From Macrostomum lignano (lineage: Eukaryota), in contig NIVC01000023.1 in the NCBI GenBank assembly GCA_002269645.1, positions 620,001 to 684,000 of the forward strand: a stretch of 64,000 nucleotides of DNA. Direction: 5' to 3'. The notes under the pieces were generated by a model. The model did no database searches, was not told where the DNA came from, and saw nothing but the letters and a program-made list of their open reading frames with translations. Positions 7,529-44,210 of this stretch are shown here, in pieces (within the stretch, counting starts at the first letter, position 1; every line of letters starts with the position of its first letter). The position numbers were made by a program, and so were the translations under genes.

Positions 7529-10310
7529 TCCCCCGCCTCCGCCTCTGACAGCTAGCGCTAGCGCGGGCTCAGTATCTACTAGTAGCAGTGCAAGTCGGTC
7601 TCGACAATCGTCTGCTTCGCAAATTGTGCCACCAATACCGCCTGTTCGAGAGCAAAGAGGCACCGCGTCGTTTGTAAGCGCCTACTGGGTTAAAACCATT
7701 GTGCAATTTTGCATTCTAATCTAAGCCTAAAAACTCAGGAGCATGTTTGGACACCCAATACCGAGTCGTAATTTTGGAATTCGTATCTAGTCGAAGTTGA
7801 AAGCTGACAGTTCGACAAAATTGAAAATAACGTGCAGTCTAATCGCTAAGCACTGTTATTAAATTAGAATTGTTAAGATTTGGGTGATTTGGGTGTGATT
7901 ATAACGTGATTATGATATGCGTATCATATTAATGAGTGTGATAAGGGTGTGATTATGATATGATTATGAAAATTGTGTGTTTATGATCTCGATGGAACTT
8001 GATTTTGATATTGATTGTGGATGATTGATTAATTTATTATGGATAATTATGATTATGATATGGGTGTGATTATATGATTATAATATGGGTGTAATAACTA
8101 AATTCCATCCTGAACTAATACGCCCCTAACAGTCTCGAGCTTTGGATCACAGCGAGCTGTACCAGCTGCACAGGCGCCAAAGTGTACAGACTGCCAATTC
8201 CGAGCAGAAGCGTCGCTTCTCTATCAATAACGGATTCGACGCGCTGCACGATCTGGTGCCCAGTTTGGCCTCAAATCCGCACGTGAAAGTGTCCAAAGCC
8301 GTGCTGTTGCACAAAGCGGCCGAGCATATGCAACGGATGAAAGCGGATCGGGCTAATATGGAACGGGAGAGTGAGCAGTTGCGCCAAGAGATTGCCAGAC
8401 TCCGAAGCGGCATCGAGGCCTGCTGCGAGCAGCTGCCATCGGCTGGCGGATTGCCTTCAGCTGCCAGCGTCGGCGGAGGCAGCAGCGGCGTCGCCGGTGG
8501 CGGATCCTCGGCTGCCGAGCTGCGTTTGGTTGAAGCGCGACGTTGGTTTGAGCATTCCTACGTACGGCCAGGGGTGCTCAACAATTGGAAGTTCTATCTG
8601 GTAAGGCGGCTGATGCCCACCTGTTCGATGGGGATTTATTTTAGCCAGCGCCAGCCTCCCAAATCCTCAGTTGCTGGGCCGGCCTTCCAGAGCCTCAGTT
8701 GCTGGGCTAGCCTCCCAGAGTGTCAGTTGCTGGGGCAGCCTCCCAGAGTGTCAGTTGCTGGGCCAGCCTCCCAGAGTGTCAGTTGCTGGGCCAGCCTCCC
8801 AGAGTGTCAGTTGCTGGGCCAGCCTCCCAGAGTGTCAGTTGCTGGGCCAGCCTCCCAGAGTGTCAGTTGCTGGGCCAGCCTCCCAGAGTGTCAGTTGCTG
8901 GGCCAGCCTCCCAGAGTGTCAGTTGCTGGGCCAGCCTCCCAGAGTGTCAGTTGCTGGGCCAGCCTCCCAGAGTGTCAGTTGCTGGGCCAGCCTCCCAGAG
9001 TGTCAGTTGCTGGGCCAGCCTCCCAGAGCCTCAGTTGCTGGGCCAGCCAGTAGCTAGGCTGGGATGCTGGAATGTCGTAATTTATATATTTAGATCATTG
9101 AATAGAAAATTGCTGAGTTCTATTTTTAACAGCTTACTCATTGTTCGCTTCACCCAAACGTTTGCCTATCGCAGTTCAGCCTGGTCATCACTGACCTGTT
9201 CGACGCCTTCAGTTCCACAGTTACTACGCACGGTCTGGACGATTTCGCTCGCTCGGTTCTTAGCTGGGTTGATCAGCACTGCAGCCTGATTAAGCTGAGG
9301 CCAGGTTTGTGCTGCGCAATTTAACAGGATTAGCCCAGCCAACTCTGGAGTAGAATCCCTTCAGTAATCTCCCAGCAACCCTTCAATAGTCGAAAGCGTT
9401 GAAAAAACTCTTGTGACTTTTAAACAACTCAAAACGACTGTAATGCGTCAGAGATGCGACTGTTGCGTCGCGAGTCGAGAAAAAAATCTTCCAAGAGTTG
9501 TTGTGTTAGCGCTTAACTTTCTACTAACTCAAGCAGACTAAATAGAGTTGTTATAAATGCAATTCTGATTCATAAAGTGATGCAGAGTCGCAGATCAAAA
9601 AAACCGCCTTAAATTGACTCTTCATGACACTCTCTGACGACTTGTACCGTGACATCTCGTCGTTTTTAGAGTCTCTACTCTCTACTCCCAGAGTCTCTAC
9701 TCTCTACTCCCAGCTTGCAACGAATCTGGGACGCTACTTGGCCTGGGTACCGTTTTTTTTTCATCGGGGAGAGTGTACATGCCTGACCGATTAAGACAGT
9801 CGGGGCCGATGTACACCCTGTGTGAGCGTGTGTGTGGGGGAGAGTGTACATGCCTGACCGATTAAGACAGTCGGGGCCGATGTACACCCTGTGTGAGCGT
9901 GTGTGTGGGGGAGAGTGTACATGCTTGACCGATTAAGACAGTCGGGGCCGATGTACACCCTGTGTGAGCGTGTGAGCGTGTGTGTGCGTGAGCAGAATTG
10001 CCCCTCAGTGCTGCATAGTAAATGATAATCTGACACCGCAAATCAATTTCCAGCCGTCCAAAGAGCCCTAACCCAGTTCAGCACCAGCACTAGCATTCTA
10101 AGCGATCCCCAGGCTGTACCGTCGCAGGTGCTGACAGGTGTACAGGCTGGCACACTGGCTCTGTCCATTGAGCCGCCGCCTTCCCTAGTGCCGCACCAGC
10201 AGGCGGGCCAGCGGCAGACGCATCGCAGCTCGTCAATGTCCGAGTCTAATAAGAATTCTTCATGGCCGGATTTGGAAAATTCCGACGAGGACTGCGATAT
10301 GATGGATTGA
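5394..10310 (+). CDS. MLXIP: Mondo/ChREBP-family bHLH-Zip transcription factor; exons 5394-7673, 8133-8600, 9175-9304, 10054-10310 (1044 aa)
   Basis: Mondo conserved regions are present: IHSGHFM, SLTYSGKLTSPKW, KIRLNNIIWR, EGKYWKRR and GNSDFIQPGLLQLQPSID. The bHLH reads SEQKRRFSINNGFDALHDL. The C-terminal NWKFYL|FSLVI...WVDQHCSL.LRP|AVQRALTQFSTSTSIL matches the family. All junctions are GT-AG and keep frame. MondoA versus ChREBP cannot be resolved (single invertebrate Mondo). Confidence 0.95.
8650..9050 (+). repeat. 28-bp minisatellite in Mondo intron 2
   Basis: Unit GTTGCTGGGCCAGCCTCCCAGAGTGTCA, about 14 copies. Confidence 0.95.
9771..9975 (+). repeat. 71-bp tandem repeat x3 in Mondo intron 3
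   Basis: GAGTGTACATGCCTGACCGATTAAGACAGTCGGGGCCGATGTACACC... starts at 9771, 9842 and 9913. Confidence 0.9.
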
Positions 10311-26099: not shown

Positions 26100-28902
26100 T
26101 CGCCCGAAGGCAATGTCGCGGCCGTTGATGATGATGCAGACCCCAAAGCCGGCGTGGCCGTCTTTGATGGATCCGTTCGTGTAGCAATGGACCTCCTGAA
26201 AATTCCAGTGGTCATTTTGCAGCATCCTTAGAGGGGATGGTGACCTTGTAGCGCTGAAAGAGATTGAGAGTGCGGGGTTCCCCGTCAGATAAGACGTGGA
26301 GCCCGCCGCTGTCTCTCAAGTCTTTGAGGCAGAGGTCAGCGTGGGGCAGAAGCTTGCGCTTAGCCATGGCCCTATGGGGCTGGATTCGAATGCCAGCGTC
26401 AGCTAGACGGCGGGCAGTCTTAGCCGCTTCCCTGCGGACAAAGATGTTCAGCGGATTAATTTTAAGGAAGGCGTTGAGGTTATCGTAAGGAGCAGACGGA
26501 GGGGCGCTCATGATCATGCGACATGCACGCCCTTGCGCTCTCCTGAGAGCCTCTAGACAGGTCTTTATCTGCAGGGCGCTAGCCCAGATCAGGCCGCCAT
26601 ACGAGATAGCGGGCCTAACCATTGCAGTTTAGATCCACCAGAGGCGCTTGGGGGTGAGCCCCCATGTGGTGCCGACAGCCCTGCGTAGTTGCGCGAGGAC
26701 TGCGAGGGCCTTCTTGGCTTTTGCTTGAACGTGGGGAGACCAGTTCAGCCTGTGGTCCAGGGTAATACCTAGACATTTAGTCTGCTTAAAGAAGGGGATT
26801 TCCCTTCCGTAAAGCATTAGCGGCCGAATCTGCCACTTGGTCCTGCTGGTGAACATGATCGCTGCGGTCTTAGTCTCAGAGAGCCTAACTTTCAGAATGG
26901 GGTCAGGCCGAGCCTCTCGGAGGAGCTCATCGATGACCATATTCCAGAGAACTGGAGACAGCACCCCACCTTGCGGGCTACCTTTGCAGACGGGGACCGT
27001 CCTCTGGTAGCCCATCAGAATGGCGGTGGCCGTGCGATGGCTGATCATGATCCATCTGGTGAGATGTGAGTGCGTTTGCCTCTCACAAAGAGCTCTTCGG
27101 AACGCCTCGAAGAGGACGTTATCGAAGGCGCCAATGATGTCCAGGAAGATCCCTAGAGCGAAGCCGTTACCAAGCACGGCCTTCTCAAGTTTATCGACCA
27201 GGACGTGCAGCGCGCTTTCAGTTGAGCGACCCGCCCGAAAGGCGTGCTGGTTCTCGCTGTGAGGCTTGTTCTCAGCTCAACAGAGAGAAGGCGCCAAAGC
27301 ACCAGTCTCTCCATCAGCTTCACCAGGGAGGAGGTCAGGCTCCTCCTCCATTTGATAGAATGGTAGTCCGGGCGGCCTGGCTTAGGGATAAAAATCACCT
27401 TTGCCTCGGTCCATGCCTGTGGGACATAGCCAAGCGTGATGCATGCCCGAAGAAGGCTGCAAAGTTTGCACAGGAAGCCTGGGAATTTAACCGCCTCTCT
27501 TAGGAGGGCAGGTACAATGCCGTCGGGTCCTGGGGCTTTGAAAGGCTTGAAGGAATTTGCCGCTCTCACGATGCGGTCCTCCGTGATGATAGAGGCAGCC
27601 AGCGCGTGACCTCCCTCCGAGTGATCCGGAGTGGTCGGGTGAGCTGGCTCGTTGGGGAAAAACGCAGTGAGCCTTACATCAAGCGTTTCCCCTGGGTTAT
27701 CCGTGGACGTACCGTCGGTGCGTTTGACCGAGGAGAGCTTAGACATTTTGTCCAGCGTAAGCGCTTTAACAATTCTGGAGGTGGGGCGTGAGCCCTCTAT
27801 AGCTCCTCACAGTATTGTCGCCATTTTTGAGCCTTTGCATTCCTAACATGCCTTTTTAACTCATGGATAGCTTCATGATAGGCGGTTTGGTCCGCTGGGC
27901 ACTTAGTTTTAGTTGCTCTGCGGTGGAGTCTCTTAGCTCTGCGACGGAGGTTGCCGAGCTCGGGATCCCTTTATAGGCTTTTAAAGCAGCTAGGGCAGGA
28001 CGCCTCAAAGGCCGCCGCCTTTGACCGAGGAGAAAGGCGCGTCTGGTAAGCGTCTCTGTCAACACAGTCGTGCACTCATCCGCTTCTTGGCATGACGTGA
28101 TCGTGGATGGTTGGCCAGGAGACCGATGGAATTCCTTCAGGGCGAGCCCGAAGGTTTCCCAATCAGTATTTCTGGCGTTCCGTCTCCACGTAACACGAGT
28201 TGCGCTACGCGCGGCCATCAGATTGAAGGAGATGAACTTGTGATCAGAGAGTGAGGACGCTGGAAGCACCCGCCACGCCCCAATACTCTGGTAGAGTCTG
28301 GGCGTTGCAAGCGTAGCGTCGATCACCTCTGACCACCGTCCGTTGTCAAAGGTAGGGGTGAACCCAGAGTTGCAGAACTCGAGGGTTGTAGAGGCAAAGT
28401 AGGCTAGGAGGTCTTCGCCTCTCTGATTAATGCCAGTGCTGCCCCAGTGAGTGTGGTGGGCGTTGATGTCGCCGGCAACCATGAGCTCGTAGTTTTTGGC
28501 AGAGCAGAGCTCTACCAGCGTAGCGAGGGCTCTGGGGACGACCGCAGCATCGCCTGGTAGGTAAACCGAGGTAATGAGGGTGGTCTTCCCAGGAAGGAGG
28601 TCCTCGGATTGGATGACGCAGATGTCCCTGTTAGACAGGTCCGATCTGAGCCACGCACTGAGCGTTTTGATCGCAAAGATGCAAGCTCTGGGAGGCTGGT
28701 TGGCCTCGCGAAGGTAAGTATAAAAACAGTTATAGCCGGCAGGGGCGTTTTGAGGCTTACCTCTGAGAGTCCAGGGTTCCTGGACGAGGATGAGCCCCGG
28801 CGTGTCGAGCTCGGCGTAACGCATAAGGTTGACCGAAGCTGCGACGCAATGTTGCAGATTAATCTGCAAGCAATGGATTCCCTGGCTGCTGATCATTATC
28901 AT
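26100..28902 (-). pseudogene. Retrotransposon ORF2 (endonuclease-RT-RNase H), frameshifted
   Basis: APE motifs: QINLQH, LVQEPW, SVYLP, AGDINAHHTHWGS, NQRGEDL, PTF, IDATL, SDH. RT motifs: KAPGPDGI, KVIFIPKPG, LDIIGAFDNV, GSPQGGVLSPVLWN, CLGITLDHRLNW, VRPAISYG. The YADD segment is missing at about 26890 (ILKV|RLSETKT). RNase H begins CYTNGS and is truncated. Confidence 0.9.
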
Positions 28903-31285: not shown

Positions 31286-33444
31286 AGCTGAAAGCGGGAA
31301 GAAGTGAGCTGAGTCACAAAAGAAAGAGGAAAGAAGAAAAAGAAAAAGGACCGCTAGCGACCGGACAACCCCCGGCCTTCCAGCCCATCGGCACGGTCAA
31401 ACACCTTAGGCATTAGGGGGTACGTTAAGCAGTACCACGGCCTGCGGACTGGCAAGCCAGACCCGCATACCCAAGTTCGGCAAAAGCCACTGGATGGGTC
31501 GCCAGCGTCGGAGCCCAGTCTGTCCAGCAGCCCTAGGGTCTGCCTTGAACACACGCGGGGACGGGTACCCTGGGTCGACTTGCGAGACAGCGTGGGGGGG
31601 TCTGCGGCTGCCAGCGGCAAATAGAGGATGCAGACCTCCCACCAGCCTTTACCTGCTGAAGATAGGGGCAGGCGTGACTGGCGGTCTCGGCCTCAGGCAC
31701 GCGTCGCGCTCATTAATCTTTTCGGCCTGGGTGCCTTTGCCTGTCAACCGCCTCGCTCGTCTCGCCGTCTCGCCATTGTCTGGTCTGAAATGGGGCTGGG
31801 GCTATTGCTTTCTCTTATAGCTGCTTTGCTTTGAGTAATCACTTCTATTGAATTGCCTTCTTCCAGCCATTCTATTCAGTGCGTTCTTTTAACTTATTCC
31901 TTCCGATTACCAATTTTCCGAACCCTATACACTAGTATTGCAACCCTATTGTAACCCTATACACTGTGCTTACAATAGCGAAAAAATGACGGTAGGCATC
32001 AACAATTGCTTTTTAGTCAACGCGTTTCAACCCATAACTAGCCAGCCGTAATGGCTGTACATTTCGTCACTCCAAGCAAAGCAGAGCTAGATGCAAATTA
32101 AGCTCTACAGCCCTGTGAGCAGACAGAGCTGCCTGCGACTACATACATACCTCGTAATACTGAAACCCGAATGTCCGTAGCTGTTGCAAAATTATCGATC
32201 GTAGTTAGCGAGACCTAGGCTGGGCATTTTTGAATGTACGTTTATTTGAACAAACAGTTTCAAATGCCTTAACATTCGTGCAGCTGTACACGGGCAAATA
32301 CTAACTGTACGTGCTGTGAGTAGCTGAGGCATATATATGTTATGGAGCAACTCCGTTTTTGTATATTATGCCTAGGTGTAACCATTGTATTTTACAGGTC
32401 AGTCTACACATAGTCAAGTTTTGCTTGAGGTGAAGAATAGCTCAGACCCAGAGAGAGTTACGAGCGGCCCTTGATGAGTTGTGACGCTTTATGTGAAAAG
32501 CAAGTTTTGATTTTTACCTTCGTGACTGAGCTTGACACTGGAAATTGAAAAGTTCTCCAAACCCTTATACAAAGTAGTATACCTAAGTAACTGGACATAT
32601 TTCTCTCGTAAGTAACTGTTTTTCAGTTCTTGTACTTTTTTTTCTTTTGTGACTTTCTTGTTTGTATCGATTCTTCTCAGCCAGCAGTCAGCAACCGCCT
32701 TACAAACCTCACTTCCAGAAAGTTAATTATTTAATAATTGCTTCCGTATATTTCCCATCAGTTTTCTGTGAAGACCAATGCAGGTGCAGTAAAGATTAAT
32801 AAAGCATATCGGACTGCATAGCACAGACCATGGATGAAGGAATAGAAAGGATTGCTCATCTGAAAGCGAGTCTATTGCCAAAACTTCCTAAAAATTGGGA
32901 TATTCCCCCATGAATTTCATTGGCTACTGGAACTTAATTATAGTCCCCCCTAAGTTCTTACTGGCTTAAGGAAAAGAAATTAGCATTCTATTCCTTCATC
33001 CATGGCACAGATGAGTCATGGCTATGACAGCACACTCTATGGTCCGTGCATCAATGTACTGATGGCTTTGCTGCAACATTTTGGAGGGCTTTTCAGTGAT
33101 CCACCAATGAGTCCCAATTGTTGCACGCCTCTGGTTTCTATGGCCACAGCAAACCAAGCACTCGCAGCTTTATTTAACTATTTGAAACGAAAAAGAGGCT
33201 TGCTGTGACCAATAGAAATCAGAGGCGTGCAACAATTGGGACTCGTTGGCGGAGCCCTGCAAACCACTCTAAACCGGTATATATTCTCTATCCATTGAAG
33301 TTACATTCTAGCTTCAAACTCGCAAATAATTTTTAAAATGAATTTGCGGATACATTATTGGATTTTTTATTTGTCTCGCAGAGCTATTTTTTAAAGCGGC
33401 TGTCACATCCGTCGACCAAACAATTCTGGCCAGGCAGACTCAAC

Positions 33445-36400
33445 ATGTCAGAGGCCGGCGCAACAGGTACTGAACAACCGGAAGAAGCCAAAGAACTGGA
33501 AGCAGAAAGCAATGTGTCCAGTCAGACTCCTAGCAGTTCTAAAGCGGAAGCCAAAGAAAAAGACAATGAGCAGAAAAAAGATTCCAGCTTTTTTTCAAAA
33601 GTCACGGCTCAATATAAGTCCATGTCGAAGGATGACAAAGAAAAGGTACTTGAAAATGCGGGAGCAGGAATTAAGCAGCTAGAAGAGCCGATTTCACCCG
33701 AGAAGAAGTTGCAAGAATCGAGACAGCTTACTAGCAAAGAGCAGCATCAGAAATTATTCGAAGACATGGATATCGATTCGATTCGCAAGCGCAGTCAGGA
33801 AGACCAATCTAAGGCACAGAAATTTATAAACAGAGATGCAGAGGAGCAGGAGCTTCTGGAGCAGGCCTCCAATCTCACCGATTCAGAACTAATATCTCAC
33901 GCGTCTGCTGGATTGCTGCTGCGTGGGCTAAGACAAGATAGCAAAGGAGGCTGGACTCGGTGCAAACGTAGGCTTGTATGCGTGCCCGAAGACGCCAGGT
34001 TGGTTGGGTCGCAGATCGGTGATGAGGTTGAGGAGCGCGAGTTCTATGAGGCCTCTCAGTTTGACAGCTTCATGCGGTCACTTGGTTCTATGAATAAAAG
34101 TTTCTCATCGAAGTTGCAGTGTGATGTGTTTATTGTGAAGGGTAAAGGAGGAGTGGACGATACTCGGCAAGACGAAAGCTGCCATCACACAGAGACTCAT
34201 GTAAAATCAAAATTTTACTCAAAAGCACATATTGTGTTTGTTCCGACTGCAGCTTGTTATCTGCAACCTAACAAGCTCTCGCAGGAAGCTACGAAAGAGC
34301 TGAAAATAATCGAACACCAACTTCGGTCCCTCGACTGGGAGCACACCGAAAATTCTATTCGGGTCTTCATGTCCAAGTTCGGCAGCCACGCGACTAGTGG
34401 AACTGTCCACTTCGGTGGAATTCTAGCATTTGAAGCATCCTATAGTTGCGTCGAAAATGAGAGCCTCGAGGTAGGCAAGTCACTGGTTTCCAAAGCACTT
34501 GACAGTGTTTTGCGAGCTGGAGTAGGAAGGTTGTTCTTCGAGGGATATTTGGGGTCAGGAGCTGGCTCTGTCTCTTACAGCAAACTAAAAACCGATGCTA
34601 AAAATGAGAACGAATTCAACAGCGAACAGATAAGTAGAGTTTCCATTCGAACAAAAAAAATTGGAGGACCTATTGAGGTGAGCTCTGAGCCATCGTGGAG
34701 ACGTGGACTAGCGAGCAGCAATCGAACGTGGCACGTTGTCAAATGCGATGCAGAGATAGTCCCAGTCTGGGATCTCTTTTTGAAAGAAGATCTTGAGGAT
34801 GCTAAAAAACTGGCTCAAAGTTTCAAATTGGTATGGGTAAAGGACAACTCTCGTGCGGATTTGTGTCCTATGGGCATTCCAAATGAGTTGGAACATGCGT
34901 TAATAAACTACAATTTATGCCTAAAAGATTTTGCAAAGCATGCAAAAAAATCATCTGATTCTCGCTTGTGGAATGAATTCTTTAAAAAACTTCTTAAAAG
35001 TATTGCCACTATTGAGCGGTTCACAGCCCCTTCTGAAAGCGGAAGTGAGTGGACAAAAAACGATGACCTGACTATCGTGCTTAGAGAATTTGTAAATCGT
35101 ACAGATTTCTTGCTTAACTCGCCAGAATCAGAGCAAATTTTGGCCTCTGTGAAACGGCTAATTCAAATATCGGGCAATGTCGATTTTCCCGAGAAGCAGA
35201 AAGTCGCTGCTGTCATCTATTTTCAGGATTTTCAGCCCTACAAACTGGTACTTAAAGAGCAGACAGTTGTTTCACCAAAAGATTTTGTTGAGATATTGAG
35301 AAGCAGATACTTAATAGATATGCATAAGTTTCTTCAGGAGAAAGGCGTTACTGCATTCCCTCATGATCATGAAATTCAAGTGTTGCAGACCATGCAGCCC
35401 GAGTTGACATCTGCTGTCAATCAGCTTCTTGAGTCGCTTACCGTTGCAGAACAGTTTTACAGCAAATTTGTGACCGCTTGTGTCCTAGCCGCCTATGGAT
35501 TTAGCCACAATGACAAGCAATTCCGGGGCTTTTTAGATATTCAACAAGTGAAACAACTAGCAGACACTATCGAATTGGAGACTACTGATTCTTTCTTCGT
35601 TAAAGCCGCAGGGAAAGATGAGTTCATTCAGGCTCAAGTGCTTGCTGTCTACTGCAGGCACGTGAGGAAAGTTGACAAAGCGGATAGGAAATGGCTGCTG
35701 GACATTTGCGAAAGTCTTTGGTTGGAAAAAATCAGAAAAATCATTTACGAGTTCGTTCAGTCAGACCATAAAAACTGGCAAAACCTTAAAGCTGAGATTT
35801 CTAATGTACTACAGCAATACCAGAAAGATGGGCAAGCGTTTTACGTCAATCTAAATCCACTACTAGAATGCACAGACAAGCGAGACGCTCAAAGTCCAAA
35901 TAAAGTTGAAAGTATCGATTTTTCAAACTCGCTAACCGCTGTTGAAACCTTTGCAATACAAGCTTTAGGCTTAAATGAGTTTTGGCCAGGCAAGCTGTCA
36001 ATGTCGACTGTCATGAAGTTCTCCGCCGAAGCAGTCCCTAATGACACTAGAATTGGGCTCGGTATTATCAAGCAGTTAGCGATGACAAACTACAACTTTA
36101 GAAATTCATCAGTGGTCCGTGTTCAGAACTTGGTAGAAGCAGACAAAGACGGTTGCGGAGATGTTTGGTCTGACAATTATCAACCAACGACACAAAAAAA
36201 TTCCGAATCAGTTTTTATTCCTTTTTGTGACGCTTTACTATTTTGCTTTCTAAGCGCAAGCACCCAGCTCAAGCAGGCACTAACTGAAAAGTTATTCGAT
36301 TGTAAGCTTGCCATTCCACTTCTGTATTCAATTGCAGATCAAAATTATCTTTTTACATGGACCCTAAGAGGTCTTGTGCTGAAGTTTCCTGAACAAGGCA

Positions 36401-39400
36401 GTTTGGGCGGCTCTAAAGAGTTGATTGTTGATACAAGTTTATTCTCCGTTGTCTCCTTGATCAGACTCGGAACGAGCAGCTTCTCTAAGTCTATCATAGC
36501 TAACAGGTGCATTAATAAGAAGCATGATGTATTCACTGTTTCTGGAAAAAATTCTTTGAAGAAGAAGTTCACCGATGGCAGCATCGAGCTTGCATGGATG
36601 CTACCAGAGGAAAATGACAAGTCGGGGCTGCCAGGTGCTGTTTGTGTGTTGAACTTGCGAGTCGATGCCATGAAGCACTCTGAGCAGAGGGACTTTCTTG
36701 CATCTGTCTCATCGTACGTAATTGTGGTTCTTCCTGGTGAGGATTACCGGCACTCGGATGAGTATTCGAAGGCGCTTCAGCAACTATACCTCAGTAAAAC
36801 TCGATTAGTAATTCTGGTGACCACACCTACTATTCCTAAGTTTTTACGAGAACTCCAGCAGACATTTAAGACTTCTGATGAAAAACATAAATTGGAACTT
36901 TTACGCTTGAAGTGGACTGACGCAGAAAATTCTACTATTGTGTGCCTAGACGAGTCCGATATAGCTGCCATGCTGAAGGAAGTGATGTTTGACGTTCAGC
37001 GCAAAGCTATTTTTTCTGAAGAGCTTACCTCACTTGCCTGCTTTAGAGCATTTGGGCAGAGAATGAAGTGGATCTTGGATGATGCAACTGACCAGGTTGG
37101 CGGACCCATTGAGAGCGCTCAGTGCTTGTTTGAAAATATTTGCAATCTTTCAGACGACTTAGCTGCTATCAAGCGGAAATTCCTTCCCCTACAGGGTAGA
37201 CTCTGCATCGAAATTTCGCAACGAAAAAAGCAGCGCTTTCGAAAGAACAGAAACATGGTGGGCGATGAGAAGTCTCATTGGGTTGGAAAGATGGACGCTG
37301 AAATACAAGAGATGAGGCGAGAGCAAATCATTCTCCTGCAAAAACAACTCGAAGATTATCCTCAATTAATGCCGGCTTTTCTAAATTTCACGCAGTCGTC
37401 AAATCCGGTTGAAGTTTTTCTGCAACAGTTGGCCATTAAACTGAATGCATTGTCCATCGACAAAATGACTGTTTTTCGAAGAGAATTGGAAAGCATTTGG
37501 CAGAAGATTTTGAAGAGTGAAGACACGACTCTCAAGAGCAAAGAACATTTTCTTGAGATGGAGAACGTCCTCAACGATGCCTCATTCGGTCTGGAGCACA
37601 TATTTCGAGAAGTAGGACAAATTTATGAAGCCATTATAAGCAACGCTGCTCTCTCAGCTCAGAACCAGGAGTTCACATGGAGCCTTGCACGATTTGCGGC
37701 TAATTTGCTTCTTCAGGGCCACGCATTGGAAATTATTGATGGTGACACATCCTCTGTTGCAACCATGTGGCTGCAAGCAGTTCTCAACCAAGTTGAGGAT
37801 ATCGTTGGAGCAAAGCGTCTGCTTGTTTTGTCGGTTCTTGGAATCCAGAGCTCAGGAAAGTCCACTCTACTCAACACCATGTTTGGCCTGCGGTTTCCTG
37901 TCAGTGCTGGCAGGTGCACCAGGGGCGCTTTCATGCAGCTTGTGAGGAACGAGCCTGAAGAGTCCGGTCTCAATGTCGATTATGTTGCCGTGGTGGACAC
38001 GGAGGGCCTCCGGGCTCCAGAACTTGGTGGAGGCATGAAGGAACACGACAATGAGCTGGCCACCATGGTGATTGGCTTGGCAGATGTCGTTCTCATCAAC
38101 ATCATGGGTGAGGGCTTGTCAGAGATTAGTGATGTTCTTCAAATTGTTGTCCACGCGTTCATCAGGATGAAGATGGCTTTCAAAAGCGTTCTGTTAGGCA
38201 AGGGGTGCATATTTCTGCACCAGAATGTTGCTGCCGTTGATTCTGTAGAGAGACTTCGGAGTGCCAGCAGCCGCCTGCTTCTCGAGCTTAACAAGACTGT
38301 AGAAACAGCCGCCGGAGAGGAAGGAGCTGCTGATCTGAAGCGCTTCACTGATATCATTGACTTCGACCCAGACGAGGATGTGTGCTACTGGCCCCATCTG
38401 TGGGAAGGCAGTCCCCCAAACGCTCCGGTGAACCCTGACTACAGTAGAAAAGCGCAGCAAGCGCGAGAGAAGATTTTAAAAAAGTTAAAACAATTTGAAA
38501 GTTCTAAAATGTCCTTTAAAAACTTGTCAATCCGATTTTGCGATCTATGGGACGCCGTACTAAAAGAAGACTTTGTGTTTAGCTTTCAAAATACTCTTGA
38601 GCTGAAAGCGTACAAAGAAGTTGAGTGCAAGTTTACAGGAATTTCCTTCAACTTTGAAAGCTGCATCAGTGACTGGGTCAGGTCTTATGGTGCCGTGAAA
38701 ATGCGTCAGTGTGGAAAAATCGATCGTCTCGAGGTGCAGTTGAACGGAATCGAGCAGCTTCTGCGTGCAAAAATGCAGAAAGAGAAAGAGACTGCTCAGC
38801 ATGAGCTCACGGAGTTTCTTGCCGGACACGAGCTCAGTCACATCTCAAAAAAATGGGAGCAAGAGCGACTCAATAATCTCGAGACTTCCAGCAGGCGAAT
38901 AGAGGAGTCCAGCATGCAGATGCTGCAAGGTCTCAAAGAGGAGCAGAGAGTGACACTCGTTACCACTGTCACAATGGACGCGTACCAGAGAGACATTCTG
39001 AGTCGGGCGAGGACACTGGCGGAAAGAACGAAGGGGGAGCAGGTCGGTGAAGAGCAGAAGACGGAAGAGTTTGAGAAAATGTGGAACCTTTTTGTTGGCC
39101 AGGTGACAACGAAGGAAGAAATTCAATGGACTGCTCCTTGCGAAGCTGAGAAAGCAGTTAAGGAGGAGTTCAGAGATGTTCAGTCTACCACATTGGATGA
39201 AGAAATCAGTCGCTTAAAAGCTCATAAGGACGCAATTTTTTTTCGTTTTATACTTTGGGGAACTTTCCAGGAAAGCTACGTGCTTGATGAGCACTACAGC
39301 TATTCTAAACCACTTACGGCTCGTATAGGTTTAAAAAAAAGACTTCCTCAAAATGTGCACAAAGACTTGTGGCAGTCGCCAACATTGCTCTAGCCAAAAT

Positions 39401-40868
39401 TGATGCGCTGTTACAGAAACGAACTGAAAGGCATATGGAGAGACACATCGTTGATAAGTCAGACTTTCAGCGTTTCGTTAGAGATATTAGAAATGAAAAT
39501 TAAAATTATAACAAAAGTGGTCTAAATGGTAAAAAAGAGCCCTCAGTAAAAGCCACACAATCATTTGAGGTGAGCCTCAGCATTCACGCATGCAGTCATG
39601 CGTTGGCTATATTCGAGGCCTGGAACAATCAGTACCAGCAGCAGCACGGCATCGCTGCAAAGATTCGTGAGTTCAAGAGCGTGGCGTTTTCCTGCTTCTC
39701 AAAAAGACTTCAACAAGAGACAGAAGAGGTCATTGCAGCCGATCTCTTTGCTGCCGTTATCAAGCAGGAGATCAGCAAGAAAGTCATCAAGGAAAAATGC
39801 TCGAAGGTCCTGAAATCTGTCTACGGCGACTTTGACCAGACAAAGCTTCATCTGATCATTCAAATTATGGAGAGCCTGGCTGACAGAGAAATTTTCGAAG
39901 ATTTTATCTTCTTCATTTGGGACAGCAAAAATTTTGCTAGGAAGTGGCTGGCTGATTACATCACAGGAACAATGTTTTCTCCCACTTCCAACAACACCAT
40001 CAAGTATAACGCGCTCATGAAAGAACTTATTGCTCCTCTTACCGAGTCAGTGAAGGACTCAGTGCACCAGGCGTCAGAGGATCTGCAAGCTGAGCTCACC
40101 AGAAATCCAGTTGCCAACAGACTCTTTGCAAAATGGATGCAAACATTTTGCGCCTCAGATTTGAAACTCGGTCTGAGCATCGAAATATTCGCTCATATCG
40201 ATGAGGACTCAATCTCTGATCCACAGAACTTCGAACGCTTGCTGTTGGGACGGCTGGAAGTCATGGAGTCGGAACTGCAAGCTGAGCACAGCGTCGAAAA
40301 TAAGGCGCAACTTGAATGGGTCGGAGAAGCACCATACGATGTTCTTCTGAACAGACTCTGGGGATGCCCGGAGCAGTGCTCATTCTGCGGTGAGCCCTGC
40401 TCCAACAGCTCGGAAGGCCACCACATCGGAGAATCCAAGTGGAGCCACATGTGCATCCAGCACAGACCGGCCGGAGTCACAGGCACGAGAGCGAACCAGA
40501 TGGGCAACGAGTTGGCTCTCACCATGTGCAACTTCGATATTCAAACAGGACAAAACTTTAACTGCGGTGCCGTCAGCTACAAGTGCAGGCAGTCGGGCAG
40601 CTGCAACAGCGGAGGTCCGGATAGCGAAAGCCTAACTTACGTTTTTCACCAGTATAAAGACTTCAAGTCTTTTTTCCCGGACTGGAAAATCGCGCCAGAC
40701 TCGTCGAATACGTCGTCGCCGTACTGGATGTGGTTCATGAGCCGCTTCAGCGAGGAGCTTCAGCGCCACTACGACTGCGATCCGCTGAATTTTCCCGAGT
40801 CCTGGCGCCAGATTTCTGCTGAGCAGGCCAAGGCCAGCCTCTCTGTGTACTCCCTGGAACACGCGTGA
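33445..40868 (+). CDS. GVIN1: Very large inducible GTPase (GVIN1/URGCP family), intronless, about 2474 aa if repaired; frameshift at the A8 run 39333-39340 and in-frame TAA at 39501
   Basis: VLIG G-domain motifs: VLSVLGIQSSGKSTLLNTMFG, SAGRCTRGAFMQL, VDTEGLRAPEL, HDNELAT, FLHQNV, YWPHLWEGSPPNAPVNPDYS. The URG4-like region reads CKLAIPLL. The C-terminus reads GCPEQCSFCGEPC...HRP...PYWMWF...PESW. The ATG at 33445 follows an acceptor ending at 33381. Whether the gene is intact or a pseudogene is unresolved. Confidence 0.88.
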
Positions 40869-41616
40869 CCCGTCCCTACTTGTGAAAAAATCAGAACTTT
40901 AAAAGTCTGAATAACTTTCAGTTCAGCCTACGAACCCGTTTTATGAAGACGTTCATGAATTGAATTTCCCCCAGTATGTATTTGCATCGGTTGCTACGAG
41001 TGGCGATCAGAGGGTTCAAAAACAAGCCTAAAAACAATGGAGCTCGATTGAACATAAACTTATGTTTATTCAAGTGGCTGGTTGAGGAACGTAGTACATA
41101 AATCCGTGACCAGATGGCCTGCACTCGACAAATTTATGTGTTTTATCTACTTTCAGTTAAATAGAAAGCAGGGCTTACTCAATACTAGTGACGTGAAACA
41201 ACAAATGTTGGAGCCCATTTTTTAGTATATTTTTGTCGAAGTCAGCAAGTTTGTGTCTGTAGTGAAACTAAGTTATCAATAGATTCAGCCTCCGACGTTT
41301 GTCGTTTCTTGTTGTTCCTAATATTGAATAGTCACTAAGTAGAAAGTTAAGCAGAACTTTCTGTTTATATATCTGTAATAACAAATTACTTATTTTATTT
41401 CATTGTACATATATTTTAGAGCAGAACTCATTAGTCCCTTTACGCCTAATCCCTCCGGTTTCGTGTTTCCACACAAAATTTTCACCCTATTCCCCGGCCT
41501 CAATTTTTATTCCCTTCATCGGGTTTATTTTCACAGTGGTGCTCAGTAAAGCATAGTGGCTGCACCAATGCATCTAGCAAGTTGTTTCCGTCTAAAAGAA
41601 ACCATTGAGTTGCTGG

Positions 41617-44210
41617 GTTACTCTATTAGACTCATGTGTTTATCAATTTGCCTGTTTACTTACTCTATTAGACTCATGTGTTTATCAATTTGCCTGTTTA
41701 CTTACTCTATTAGACTCATGTGTTTATCAATTTGCCTGTTTACTTACTCTATTAGACTCATGTGTTTATCAATTTGCCTGTTTACTTACTCTATTAGACT
41801 CGTGTGTTTATCAATTTGCCTGTTTACTTACTCTATTAGACTCATGTGTTTATCAATTTGCCTGTTTACTTACTCTATTAGACTCATGTGTTTATCAATT
41901 TGCCTGTTTACTTACTCTATTAGACTCGTGTGTTTATCAATTTGCCTGTTTACTTACTCTATTAGACTCATGTGTTTATCAATTTGCCTGTTTACTTACT
42001 CTATTAGACTCATGTGTTTATCAATTTGCCTGTTTACTTACTCTATTAGACTCGTGTGTTTATCAATTTGCCTGTTTACTTACTCTATGTCCGTGTGTTT
42101 ATCAATTTGCCTGTTTACTTACTCTATTAGACTCGTGTGTTTATCAATTTGCCTGTTTACTTACTCTATTAGACTCATGTGTTTATCAATTTGCCTGTTT
42201 ACTTACTCTATTAGACTCGTGTGTTTATCAATTTGCCTGTTTACTTACTCTATTAGACTCGTGTGTTTATCAATTTGCCTGTTTACTTACTCTATTAGAC
42301 TCGTGTGTTTATCAATTTGCCTGTTTACTTACTCTATTAGACTCGTGTGTTTATCAATTTGCCTGTTTACTTACTCTATTAGACTCGTGTGTTTATCAAT
42401 TTGCCTGTTTACTTACTCTATTAGACTCATGTGTTTATCAATTTGCCTGTTTACTTACTCTATTAGACTCGTGTGTTTATCAATTTGCCTGTTTACTTAC
42501 TCTATTAGACTCGTGTGTTTATCAATTTGCCTGTTTACTTACTCTATTAGACTCGTGTGTTTATCAATTTGCCTGTTTACTTACTCTATTAGACTCATGT
42601 GTTTATCAATTTGCCTGTTTACTTACTCTATTAGACTCATGTGTTTATCAATTTGCCTGTTTACTTACTCTATTAGACTCATGTGTTTATCAATTTGCCG
42701 GTTTACTTACTCTATTAGACTCATGTGTTTATCAATTTGCCTGTTTACTTACTCTATTAGACTCATGTGTTTATCAATTTGCCTGTTTACTTACTCTATT
42801 AGACTCGTGTGTTTATCAATTTGCCTGTTTACTTACTCTATTAGACTCGTGTGTTTATCAATTTGCCTGTTTACTTACTCTATTAGACTCATGTGTTTAT
42901 CAATTTGCCTGTTTACTTACTCTATTAGACTCATGTGTTTATCAATTTGCCTGTTTACTTACTCTATTAGACTCGTGTGTTTATCAATTTGCCTGTTTAC
43001 TTACTCTATTAGACTCATGTGTTTATCAATTTGCCTGTTTACTTACTCTATTAGACTCATGTGTTTATCAATTTGCCTGTTTACTTACTCTATGTCCGTG
43101 TGTTTATCAATTTGCCTGTTTACTTACTCTATTAGACTCATGTGTTTATCAATTTGCCTGTTTACTTACTCTATTAGACTCATGTGTTTATCAATTTGCC
43201 TGTTTACTTACTCTATTAGACTCGTGTGTTTATCAATTTGCCTGTTTACTTACTCTATTAGACTCATGTGTTTATCAATTTGCCTGTTTACTTACTCTAT
43301 TAGACTCATGTGTTTATCAATTTGCCTGTTTACTTACTCTATTAGACTCGTGTGTTTATCAATTTGCCTGTTTACTTACTCTATGTCCGTGTGTTTATCA
43401 ATTTGCCTGTTTACTTACTCTATGTCCGTGTGTTTATCAATTTGCCTGTTTACTTACTCTATGTCCGTGTGTTTATCAATTTGCCTGTTTACTTACTCTA
43501 TGTCCGTGTGTTTATCAATTTGCCTGTTTACTTACTCTATGTCCGTGTGTTTATAAATTTGCCTGTTTACTTACTCTATGTCCGTGTGTTTATAAATTTG
43601 CCTGTTTACTTACTCTATGTCCGTGTGTTTATAAATTTGCCTGTTTACTTACTCTTTGTCCGTGTGTTTATCAATTTCCTTGTTTACTTACTCTATGTCC
43701 GTGTGTTTATCAATTTGCCTGTTTACTTACTCTATGTCCGTGTGCTTATCAATTTGCCTGTTTACTTACTCTATGTCCGTGTGTTTATCAATTTCCTTGT
43801 TTACTTACTCTATGTCCGTGTGTTTATCGATTTCCTTGTTTACTTACTCTATGTCCGTGTGTTTATCAATTTCCTTGTTTACTTACTCTATGTCCGTGTG
43901 TTTATCGATTTCCTTGTTTACTTACTCTATGTCCGTGTGTTTATCAATTTCCTTGTTTACTTACTCTATGTCCGTGTGTTTATCGATTTCCTTGTTTACT
44001 TACTCTATGTCCGTGTGTTTATCAATTTCCTTGCTTGCTTACTCTATGTCCGTGTGTTTATCAATTTCCTTGCTTGCTTACTCTAGGCCTATGTGTTTAT
44101 TGATTGCCTTATTTACTTACTTAATGTCTGTGTGTTTATTAACTACCTTGTTTACTTACTCTATGTCCGTGTGTTTATCGATCGTCTTGATACTTACTCT
44201 ACATGTATGT
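41617..44210 (+). repeat. 2.6-kb polar minisatellite: 42-bp units switching to 39-bp units
   Basis: TTACTCTATTAGACTC(A/G)TGTGTTTATCAATTTGCCTGTTTAC runs to about 43375. TTACTCTATGTCCGTGTGTTTATCAATTTGCCTGTTTAC follows and decays toward 44210. Confidence 0.95.

Follow-up and report, generated by a model that had tools for sequence, protein, structure and literature searches.

This study describes a giant GTPase gene of the free-living flatworm Macrostomum lignano, contained in a 64,000-nucleotide stretch of contig NIVC01000023.1 (assembly GCA_002269645.1, positions 620,001 to 684,000 of the forward strand; hereafter the window, whose own numbering is used below). The N-terminal part of its product (33973-34845, forward strand, amino acids (aa) ~177-467) is almost certainly a genuine but divergent MACPF domain, a conclusion drawn from both its predicted fold and its homology to MACPF proteins. 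A GTPase of the URGCP/VLIG type was shown to be carried by the same cytosolic-type polypeptide, and sequence comparisons indicate that this architecture is conserved across bilaterians. The wider proposal, namely that the GVIN/VLIG giant GTPases ancestrally bear a divergent MACPF domain at their N-terminus, which forms a distinct clade and works by the pore mechanism outlined below, is favoured as a whole, with appreciable reserve.

Family profile and predicted fold

The relationship to MACPF proteins emerged at the level of the family. A profile built from 28 sequences of the relatives (alignment A1) matched the PDB sequences of C8-alpha (6e-09), pleurotolysin B (5e-05), C8-beta (2.8e-04) and Plu-MACPF (0.1), and in the HMMER alignment the FGSH...GG block of the family faced YGTH...GG of C8-alpha, in which a gap of one residue was opened. 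Invariant positions of A1 comprised the G of FGSH, the GG hinge, a second GG, two Trp and two Leu (G148, G159, G160, G242, G243, W253). When A1 members were scanned singly at E<=10, 11 out of 28 matched the Pfam MACPF model. Six relatives (P0072, P0015, P0082, P0079, P0047 and P0104) even lay above its gathering score of 21.5 bits, with scores of 46.5, 43.4, 30.2, 30.1, 28.6 and 26.3 bits; one of them, P0072 (2439 aa), also carries the GTPase. Relatives were tied to the window domain at E-values of 3e-29 to 1e-10, and the latter is assigned to the MACPF superfamily by this transitive sequence homology.

Pfam detection is nevertheless patchy and reaches only a minority of the GVIN clade: five further relatives from a frog, a sea urchin, a flatworm, an eel and a bird (a fragment in the last case; P0007, P0050, P0088, P0013 and P0002) gave no MACPF match at E<=0.01. 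This may be a reason why the architecture went unremarked.

The fold was predicted with AlphaFold2 for aa 166-475, template-free and with A1 as alignment. The model reached a mean predicted local distance difference test score (pLDDT) of 77.6 and a predicted template modelling score of 0.72, with 151 residues at a pLDDT of at least 90. It displayed a bent central sheet made of long strands (model residues 90-108, 150-171, 234-241 and 265-275), a helix-turn-helix (115-147) directly before the signature strand, and two helical, partly low-confidence clusters (36-89 and 172-233, the low-confidence stretches being 52-86 and 197-207). Foldseek returned 59 PDB matches at E<=1e-3, of which the best 50 were all MACPF proteins: pleurotolysin B (2e-12), GNIP1Aa, MPEG1/perforin-2, perforin, C8-alpha, C8-beta, C9 and C6, as well as Bacteroides MACPF, Mpf2Ba1, TgPLP1, Plu-MACPF and astrotactin-2. 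Neither gasdermin nor aerolysin-type structures occurred among these best 50. Foldseek probability was 1.00, the TM-score (template modelling score, on the query) went up to 0.58 and identity in the structural alignments was 9-17%.

A first-pass annotation, made from the letters of the window only, had placed a MACPF-like domain at the GVIN N-terminus and had named a missing fold together with a missing profile match as grounds for giving the idea up. Family profile, sibling proteins above the Pfam cut-off and structural matches now all speak for the domain; the bent sheet and both helical clusters were modelled as it had anticipated, and the folded part (33973-34845) is slightly larger than the range first proposed.

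Signature motif

The signature-like motif F-G-S-H-x8-G-G opens the third long strand of the model (34378-34419, aa 312-325 counted from Met 33445). This core, FGSHATSGTVHFGG, is the end of the longer string FMSKFGSHATSGTVHFGG (34366-34419). Downstream follow IGGPIEV from 34660 (IGGP...W covering 34660-34698), the GG-X9-W motif (34663-34698; G407, G408 and W418), SWRRGLASSNRTWHVV (34693-34740) and IVPVWDLF (34756-34779), which closes a conserved block. All the strings that had been quoted in the first-pass annotation were recovered at their positions and inside one open reading frame (ORF).

Several observations on the window copy weigh against its being a MACPF domain. The only signature reported for MACPF is Y(F)-G-T(S)-H-X7-G-G (PMC5483515), and eight residues instead of the canonical seven separate H from GG in the window copy, a one-residue departure of which the first-pass annotation had rightly warned. 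The strict form [YW]G[ST]H[FY]-x6-GG had no match in the six-frame translation of the window. In addition, neither the whole protein nor aa 1-652 or aa 166-475 matched PF01823, even at E<=10, and a phmmer comparison of the N-terminus with PDB sequences was also without match. The Pfam search that had been proposed as a check thus turned out negative, since the window protein alone gives no PF01823 match and a family profile is needed.

The deviating spacing is a property of the family. Among 86 full-length homologous domains, 79 displayed [FY]G[ST]H-x8-GG and a single one the canonical x7 spacing; a downstream GG-Xn-W was found in 75, with n=9 in 71 of these. The extra residue is a clade-wide one-residue insertion, and [FY]-G-[ST]-H-x8-GG ... 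GG-X9-W is the hallmark of the clade. For the relaxed pattern [FYW]G[ST]H-x7/8-GG, the six translated frames of the window contained one match where shuffles predicted 0.005, which is beyond chance. The signature pattern is taken here as a diagnostic aid and not as what defines the MACPF superfamily.

Relatives of the N-terminal domain

With aa 161-497 as query, HMMER was run exhaustively against 1.84 billion representatives and yielded 275 relatives at E<=1e-3, 127 of them at E<=1e-10, all with identities of at most ~33%. Word-indexed protein searches, conducted with the single domain as well as with the 28-sequence alignment, found no relatives, a result that reflects the limit of the word index and is uninformative on absence. 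Many relatives are 2300-2600 aa long and carry the domain at about residues 200-500, and the window protein could be aligned collinearly with relatives of 2406-2462 aa (tblastn). Wherever a relative extended far enough, a GVIN-type GTPase was present (45/45, with the window's own GTPase domain as probe), and for examples from a frog, a sea urchin, a flatworm and an eel Pfam confirmed URGCP together with URGCP_GTPase. The suspicion that the feature might be general to GVINs was therefore well founded.

Recorded names were 'interferon-induced very large GTPase 1(-like)' or 'VLIG-type G domain-containing protein'. Among vertebrates, the domain occurred in the frogs Pyxicephalus and Leptobrachium, in the bird Zosterops, in eel, sturgeon, bichir and tarpon, and in lamprey; other hosts were the sea urchin Lytechinus, the nemertean Lineus and Macrostomum itself. 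No mammal was found among the 30 relatives looked up by name. A 505-aa fragment from Ficedula (flycatcher) is named 'MACPF domain-containing protein' by UniRef. This spread over flatworm, nemertean and sea urchin, and over vertebrates from lamprey through fishes and frogs to birds, indicates that the MACPF-GTPase architecture is old, at least bilaterian in age, and that it predates the interferon system. Flatworms are not known to have an interferon system. Since the present host is a flatworm and not a vertebrate, the 'interferon-induced' in the names of the relatives applies by homology only.

One of the relatives, P0104 (820 aa), displayed a weak SAM-like match N-terminal to MACPF (aa 115-141; PF22931, 22.5 bits for a cut-off of 25). 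Some GVINs may thus have a small folded domain ahead of MACPF.

Organization of the gene

All the motifs described above lie in a single ORF (33358-39393, forward strand) with an open frame of 2011 codons and a first Met at 33445, from which a protein of 1982 aa is read. An identical protein is recorded on contig NIVC01000023.1, the locus being NIVC01000023.1:652445-660393, and the gene consists almost entirely of a single long exon. Its product begins with a highly charged region of low complexity (33445-33939, aa 1-165), in which E, D, K, R, S and Q make up 59% of the residues; homologues align from ~33871 onward only. Neither a signal peptide nor a transmembrane segment was found in the window protein (the best 19-aa hydrophobic window of the first 70 aa scored -0.79), and a marginally hydrophobic N-terminus was seen in just one of 41 long relatives. 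This fits the cytosolic location known for GVINs.

Between MACPF and the next recognised domain extends a linker (34855-36225, aa 471-927), conserved across GVINs at profile level only and found in 87/150 relatives by iterated hidden Markov model searches. The AlphaFold2 model of aa 471-930 was all helix (pLDDT 70.3) and found no significant fold match in PDB (best E = 0.3). Then follow a URGCP-like domain (36226-36891, aa 928-1149; Pfam PF25496, E 5.7e-39) and a URGCP/VLIG-type GTPase domain of the dynamin superfamily (37306-38445, aa 1288-1667; Pfam PF25683, URGCP_GTPase, E 2.6e-106), with weaker RHD3 and Dynamin_N matches at the P-loop of the latter. Based on these two Pfam assignments, the window protein is classified as a GVIN/VLIG giant GTPase, and the perforin-like module is joined to a dynamin-superfamily GTPase just as the first-pass annotation had it.

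The same annotation had also attached a Cys/His C-terminus to the protein; in this copy, however, two lesions intervene. At an A8 homopolymer (39333-39340) the frame of the relatives passes from 1 to 3, so that full-length relatives aligned by tblastn follow frame 1 up to ~39357 and then frame 3 from ~39315-39411 to 40829-40859, while the annotated protein stops at 39391-39393. An in-frame TAA (39501-39503) then interrupts the frame-3 continuation at a place that is coding in the relatives from flatworm and sea urchin. The C-terminal GVIN region (39504-40868, forward strand) is consequently no longer in frame with the upstream ORF and is severed from it, and the protein as assembled stops at aa 1982, lacking the Cys/His tail. 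This region is 28-31% identical to sea-urchin and nemertean GVIN-like C-termini (E 2e-74 and 2e-70) and includes the cluster WGCPEQCSFCGEPC...H...H.C.QHRP.G (~40360-40480, frame 3), which looks like a zinc-binding motif; no Pfam family matched it. The Cys/His C-terminus is ancestral to the family but lies out of frame here. A short intron removing the TAA (GT..AG candidates of 63 and 75 nucleotides were spotted by eye) was rejected as unlikely because relatives align coding residues across the stop. This copy may be truncated, decaying or mis-assembled: the lesions are either assembly errors, plausible at least for the homopolymer, or those of a recently truncated paralogue.

Elsewhere in the window, ORFs were found for an HLH domain (8142-9053, forward strand), a long interspersed nuclear element (LINE)-type endonuclease (Exo_endo_phos_2; 27856-28902, reverse strand) and a GoLoco/TPR protein (GPSM/LGN-like; 58527-59300, forward strand), neighbours that indicate an animal genome. 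GC skew was extreme at 1-2000 (-0.67), 48001-50000 (-0.61) and 62001-64000 (+0.61), with AT skew as well; these blocks are probably simple or satellite-like repeats. Long ORFs also occurred within skewed or low-GC sequence (41556-44103 and 48204-49659), and Pfam recognised nothing in ORFs 41605-44103 and 48439-49659.

Traits of pore-forming MACPF domains

Two traits are reported to separate pore-forming from other MACPF proteins. A tryptophan after the tandem glycine (GGXnW) is conserved in the former and absent from astrotactins, BRINPs and Torso-like, and the first transmembrane hairpin region (TMH1) is nearly missing in neuronal, non-pore MACPFs (PMC5483515). Both were encountered in the GVIN clade. 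G407, G408 and W418 of the window copy are invariant in A1. The first helical cluster, equivalent to TMH1 (or CH1), lies between long strands 1 and 2 of the model (34045-34206, aa 201-254) and counts 54 residues, for 50-57 in the family; the second, equivalent to TMH2 (or CH2), corresponds to 34453-34638 (aa 337-398, model helices 176-198) and counts 62, for 53-62 in the family, the window copy having a 5-residue insertion there relative to most relatives of the alignment block. Both regions are thus full-size and matched, and their lengths are tightly conserved from flatworm to bird despite sequence divergence. From sequence, the GVIN MACPF would therefore be of the pore-former type, with its GG-Xn-W and a full-size TMH1 matching TMH2.

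The composition of the two clusters was also considered. Gly, Ser and Ala abound in both, around a turn that is itself rich in Gly, with consensus GYSVSASAKAGFLGFSAEAGASYS and ALNASVSASYSGFG...GGSVS, and column-averaged hydrophobicity alternates over ~20 columns in TMH1 and ~24 columns in TMH2. The amphipathicity of these putative hairpins is only suggestive.

Other results speak against a pore. The column-averaged beta-moment was reached by 7.5% (TMH1) and 3.5% (TMH2) of shuffles, which is weak; per-sequence values (z ~0.3-0.7 across the family, 1.0 and -0.24 in the window copy) were not significant; and TMH1 of the window copy is more charged than the family consensus. No accessory domain for lipid or glycan binding (C2-, lectin- or P2-like) could be recognised in the ~460 aa that follow MACPF. 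Several MACPF proteins are, besides, not lytic (PMC5483515). Finally, human GVIN1 is active as an ORF of 1808 aa for which no MACPF has been described, so that its coat forms with no need of one; some lineages may have lost the domain.

Comparison with known systems

With pleurotolysin B, MPEG1/perforin-2, perforin, C8-alpha and C9, the GVIN domain shares the bent sheet, two clusters of ~55 aa and the helix-turn-helix before the signature strand. Common to it and to the MACPF pore-formers are also the G-[ST]-H ... GG hinge motif, the tryptophan of GG-Xn-W and an immune or attack-related setting. It differs from them by the eight instead of seven residues between H and GG, by the lack of a signal peptide and a presumably cytosolic location, and by its surroundings: instead of a C2, P2, TSP, LDLRA or lectin domain, a helical linker of ~450 aa and then a giant GTPase come after it. 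For the GVIN domain itself, pore formation is inferred.

Astrotactin-1/2, BRINP1-3 and Torso-like also have the MACPF fold and, like GVIN, are large multidomain proteins. Yet they lack the GG-Xn-W tryptophan and nearly all of TMH1 (PMC5483515), whereas the GVIN clade keeps both.

On the GTPase side, the closest systems are the GVIN/VLIG proteins themselves (mouse Gvin1, human GVIN1/GVINP1), which form the fourth family of interferon-inducible GTPases. Their URGCP domain, URGCP/VLIG GTPase, helical regions and C-terminal Cys/His region are all recognisable here, and relatives named 'interferon-induced very large GTPase 1-like' share the window's N-terminal domain. Human GVIN1 was published as an 1808-aa ORF made up of N- and C-terminal domains and two LG domains, MACPF not being described; it coats Burkholderia thailandensis in the cytosol and, together with cofactors, dislodges a protein of the outer membrane (bioRxiv 10.1101/2025.03.24.645074). 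These coats were likened to those of GBP1 in the same paper. GBP coats and their separate membrane-damaging partners follow the same logic, in which a dynamin-superfamily GTPase assembles on the pathogen surface and membrane damage ensues. In GVINs, by contrast, the putative membrane-damaging module belongs to the same polypeptide as the GTPase; the likeness is one of working and not of family membership.

Proposed mechanism and alternative explanations

The following sequence of events is proposed. The GTPase and C-terminal parts would bring GVIN onto a target surface, either a pathogen or a pathogen-containing membrane, and would drive an assembly that depends on nucleotide, of the kind reported for GBPs and for the coats of human GVIN1. 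Such assembly would raise the local concentration of MACPF arms, which could then oligomerise while their two ~55-residue helical clusters unfurl into beta-hairpins; these, once inserted, would perforate or destabilise the membrane. We put pore formation or membrane insertion by the GVIN family slightly below an even chance. As to the 'self-contained membrane-attack machine' envisaged in the first-pass annotation, the fusion of MACPF to GTPase stands, while the attack itself stays conjectural, with hairpin amphipathicity no more than suggestive and no accessory lipid-binding domain in sight.

The main rival is a MACPF fold repurposed for non-lytic ends, that is, as an oligomerisation, membrane-docking or ligand-recognition module comparable to astrotactins, BRINPs, Torso-like and the non-inserting complement components. 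Non-lytic MACPF proteins are well documented (PMC5483515), astrotactin-2 figures among the structural matches, the amphipathic periodicity of the clusters is statistically weak, no accessory membrane-binding domain follows MACPF, and the human GVIN1 coat works without any described MACPF part. However, the GVIN clade retains the GG-Xn-W tryptophan and a full-length TMH1, both wanting in the developmental, non-pore MACPFs (PMC5483515); it also keeps its cluster lengths from flatworm to bird though sequences differ, and the family operates in an immune-effector context. Repurposing is accordingly regarded as a serious but rather unlikely outcome. Far more remote is the idea that an unrelated domain bears the motif by mere coincidence, or that the domain belongs to another class of beta-pore-formers (gasdermin, aerolysin/ETX-MTX2). 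Apart from the unmatched strict pattern, it can invoke a sub-threshold ETX_MTX2 match in one relative (E 7e-4, 19.9 bits for a cut-off of 22) and a sub-threshold SLC25_like match in the window copy, both of which were set aside as noise, like DUF1967 and others in single relatives. Against it stand a relaxed motif hardly ever expected by chance in such a window and conserved in most relatives, profile matches, and the best 50 structural matches, all to MACPF and none to gasdermin or aerolysin-type proteins. This last explanation is already refuted as far as the tools used allow, and we consider it extremely improbable.

A different objection concerns the locus rather than the family. It might be a decaying or truncated paralogue, whose MACPF-like segment would be a relic no longer under selection. 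The frameshift and stop downstream speak for this view and count against the functional reading of this copy; both the A8 frame change and the TAA fall inside sequence aligning to coding residues of the relatives. The window copy is also very divergent: it is the sole member of its cluster, shares no more than 33% identity with any relative over the MACPF region, and departs from consensus where VIDRG has become VVKCD and IYWWKA has become ILAFEA. On the other hand, long neutral decay is unlikely to have left a frame of 2011 codons open upstream and a further ~450 codons open after the stop. The copy has also retained every invariant or nearly invariant position of the family, its homopolymer frameshift may be an error of assembly, and a protein of comparable length (1954 aa) is annotated for P0013, a relative from eel. 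A relic at this locus is therefore judged improbable, more so than a repurposed MACPF fold.

Significance

The full-text literature yielded no paper linking GVIN/VLIG with MACPF within its coverage, which leaves subscription journals aside; co-occurrences of the terms were unrelated transcriptome lists. Likewise, neither 'MACPF' nor 'perforin' appears in the text of the GVIN1 paper (bioRxiv 10.1101/2025.03.24.645074). Pfam already picks up MACPF in some members, and UniRef has so named the bird fragment mentioned above. What is new here is the recognition and analysis of the GTPase-coupled, cytosolic architecture of a known fold, not a new fold or a new kind of system.

Among the four families of interferon-inducible GTPases, least is understood about the GVINs, whose first biological function, the bacterial coat of GVIN1, was reported only in 2025. 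A conserved N-terminal domain of the perforin type provides a concrete hypothesis, open to test, for the purpose of the rest of GVIN. One may speculate further that GVINs were ancestrally, and still are in most animal lineages, single-chain cytosolic membrane-attack machines, whose GTPase coat, assembled on a pathogen or vacuole, positions and triggers an N-terminal perforin-like domain that punches pores from the host cytosol; at present we hold this extension to be unlikely in its full scope. If true, it would place next to complement, perforin and MPEG1 a fourth arm of MACPF immunity, one that predates interferon and that some lineages may have lost. The occurrence of the same domain in GVINs from flatworm to birds suggests that an immune GTPase family carries its own membrane-piercing arm; with it, the few MACPF immune effectors listed for animals would gain a member that is cytosolic and coupled to a GTPase.

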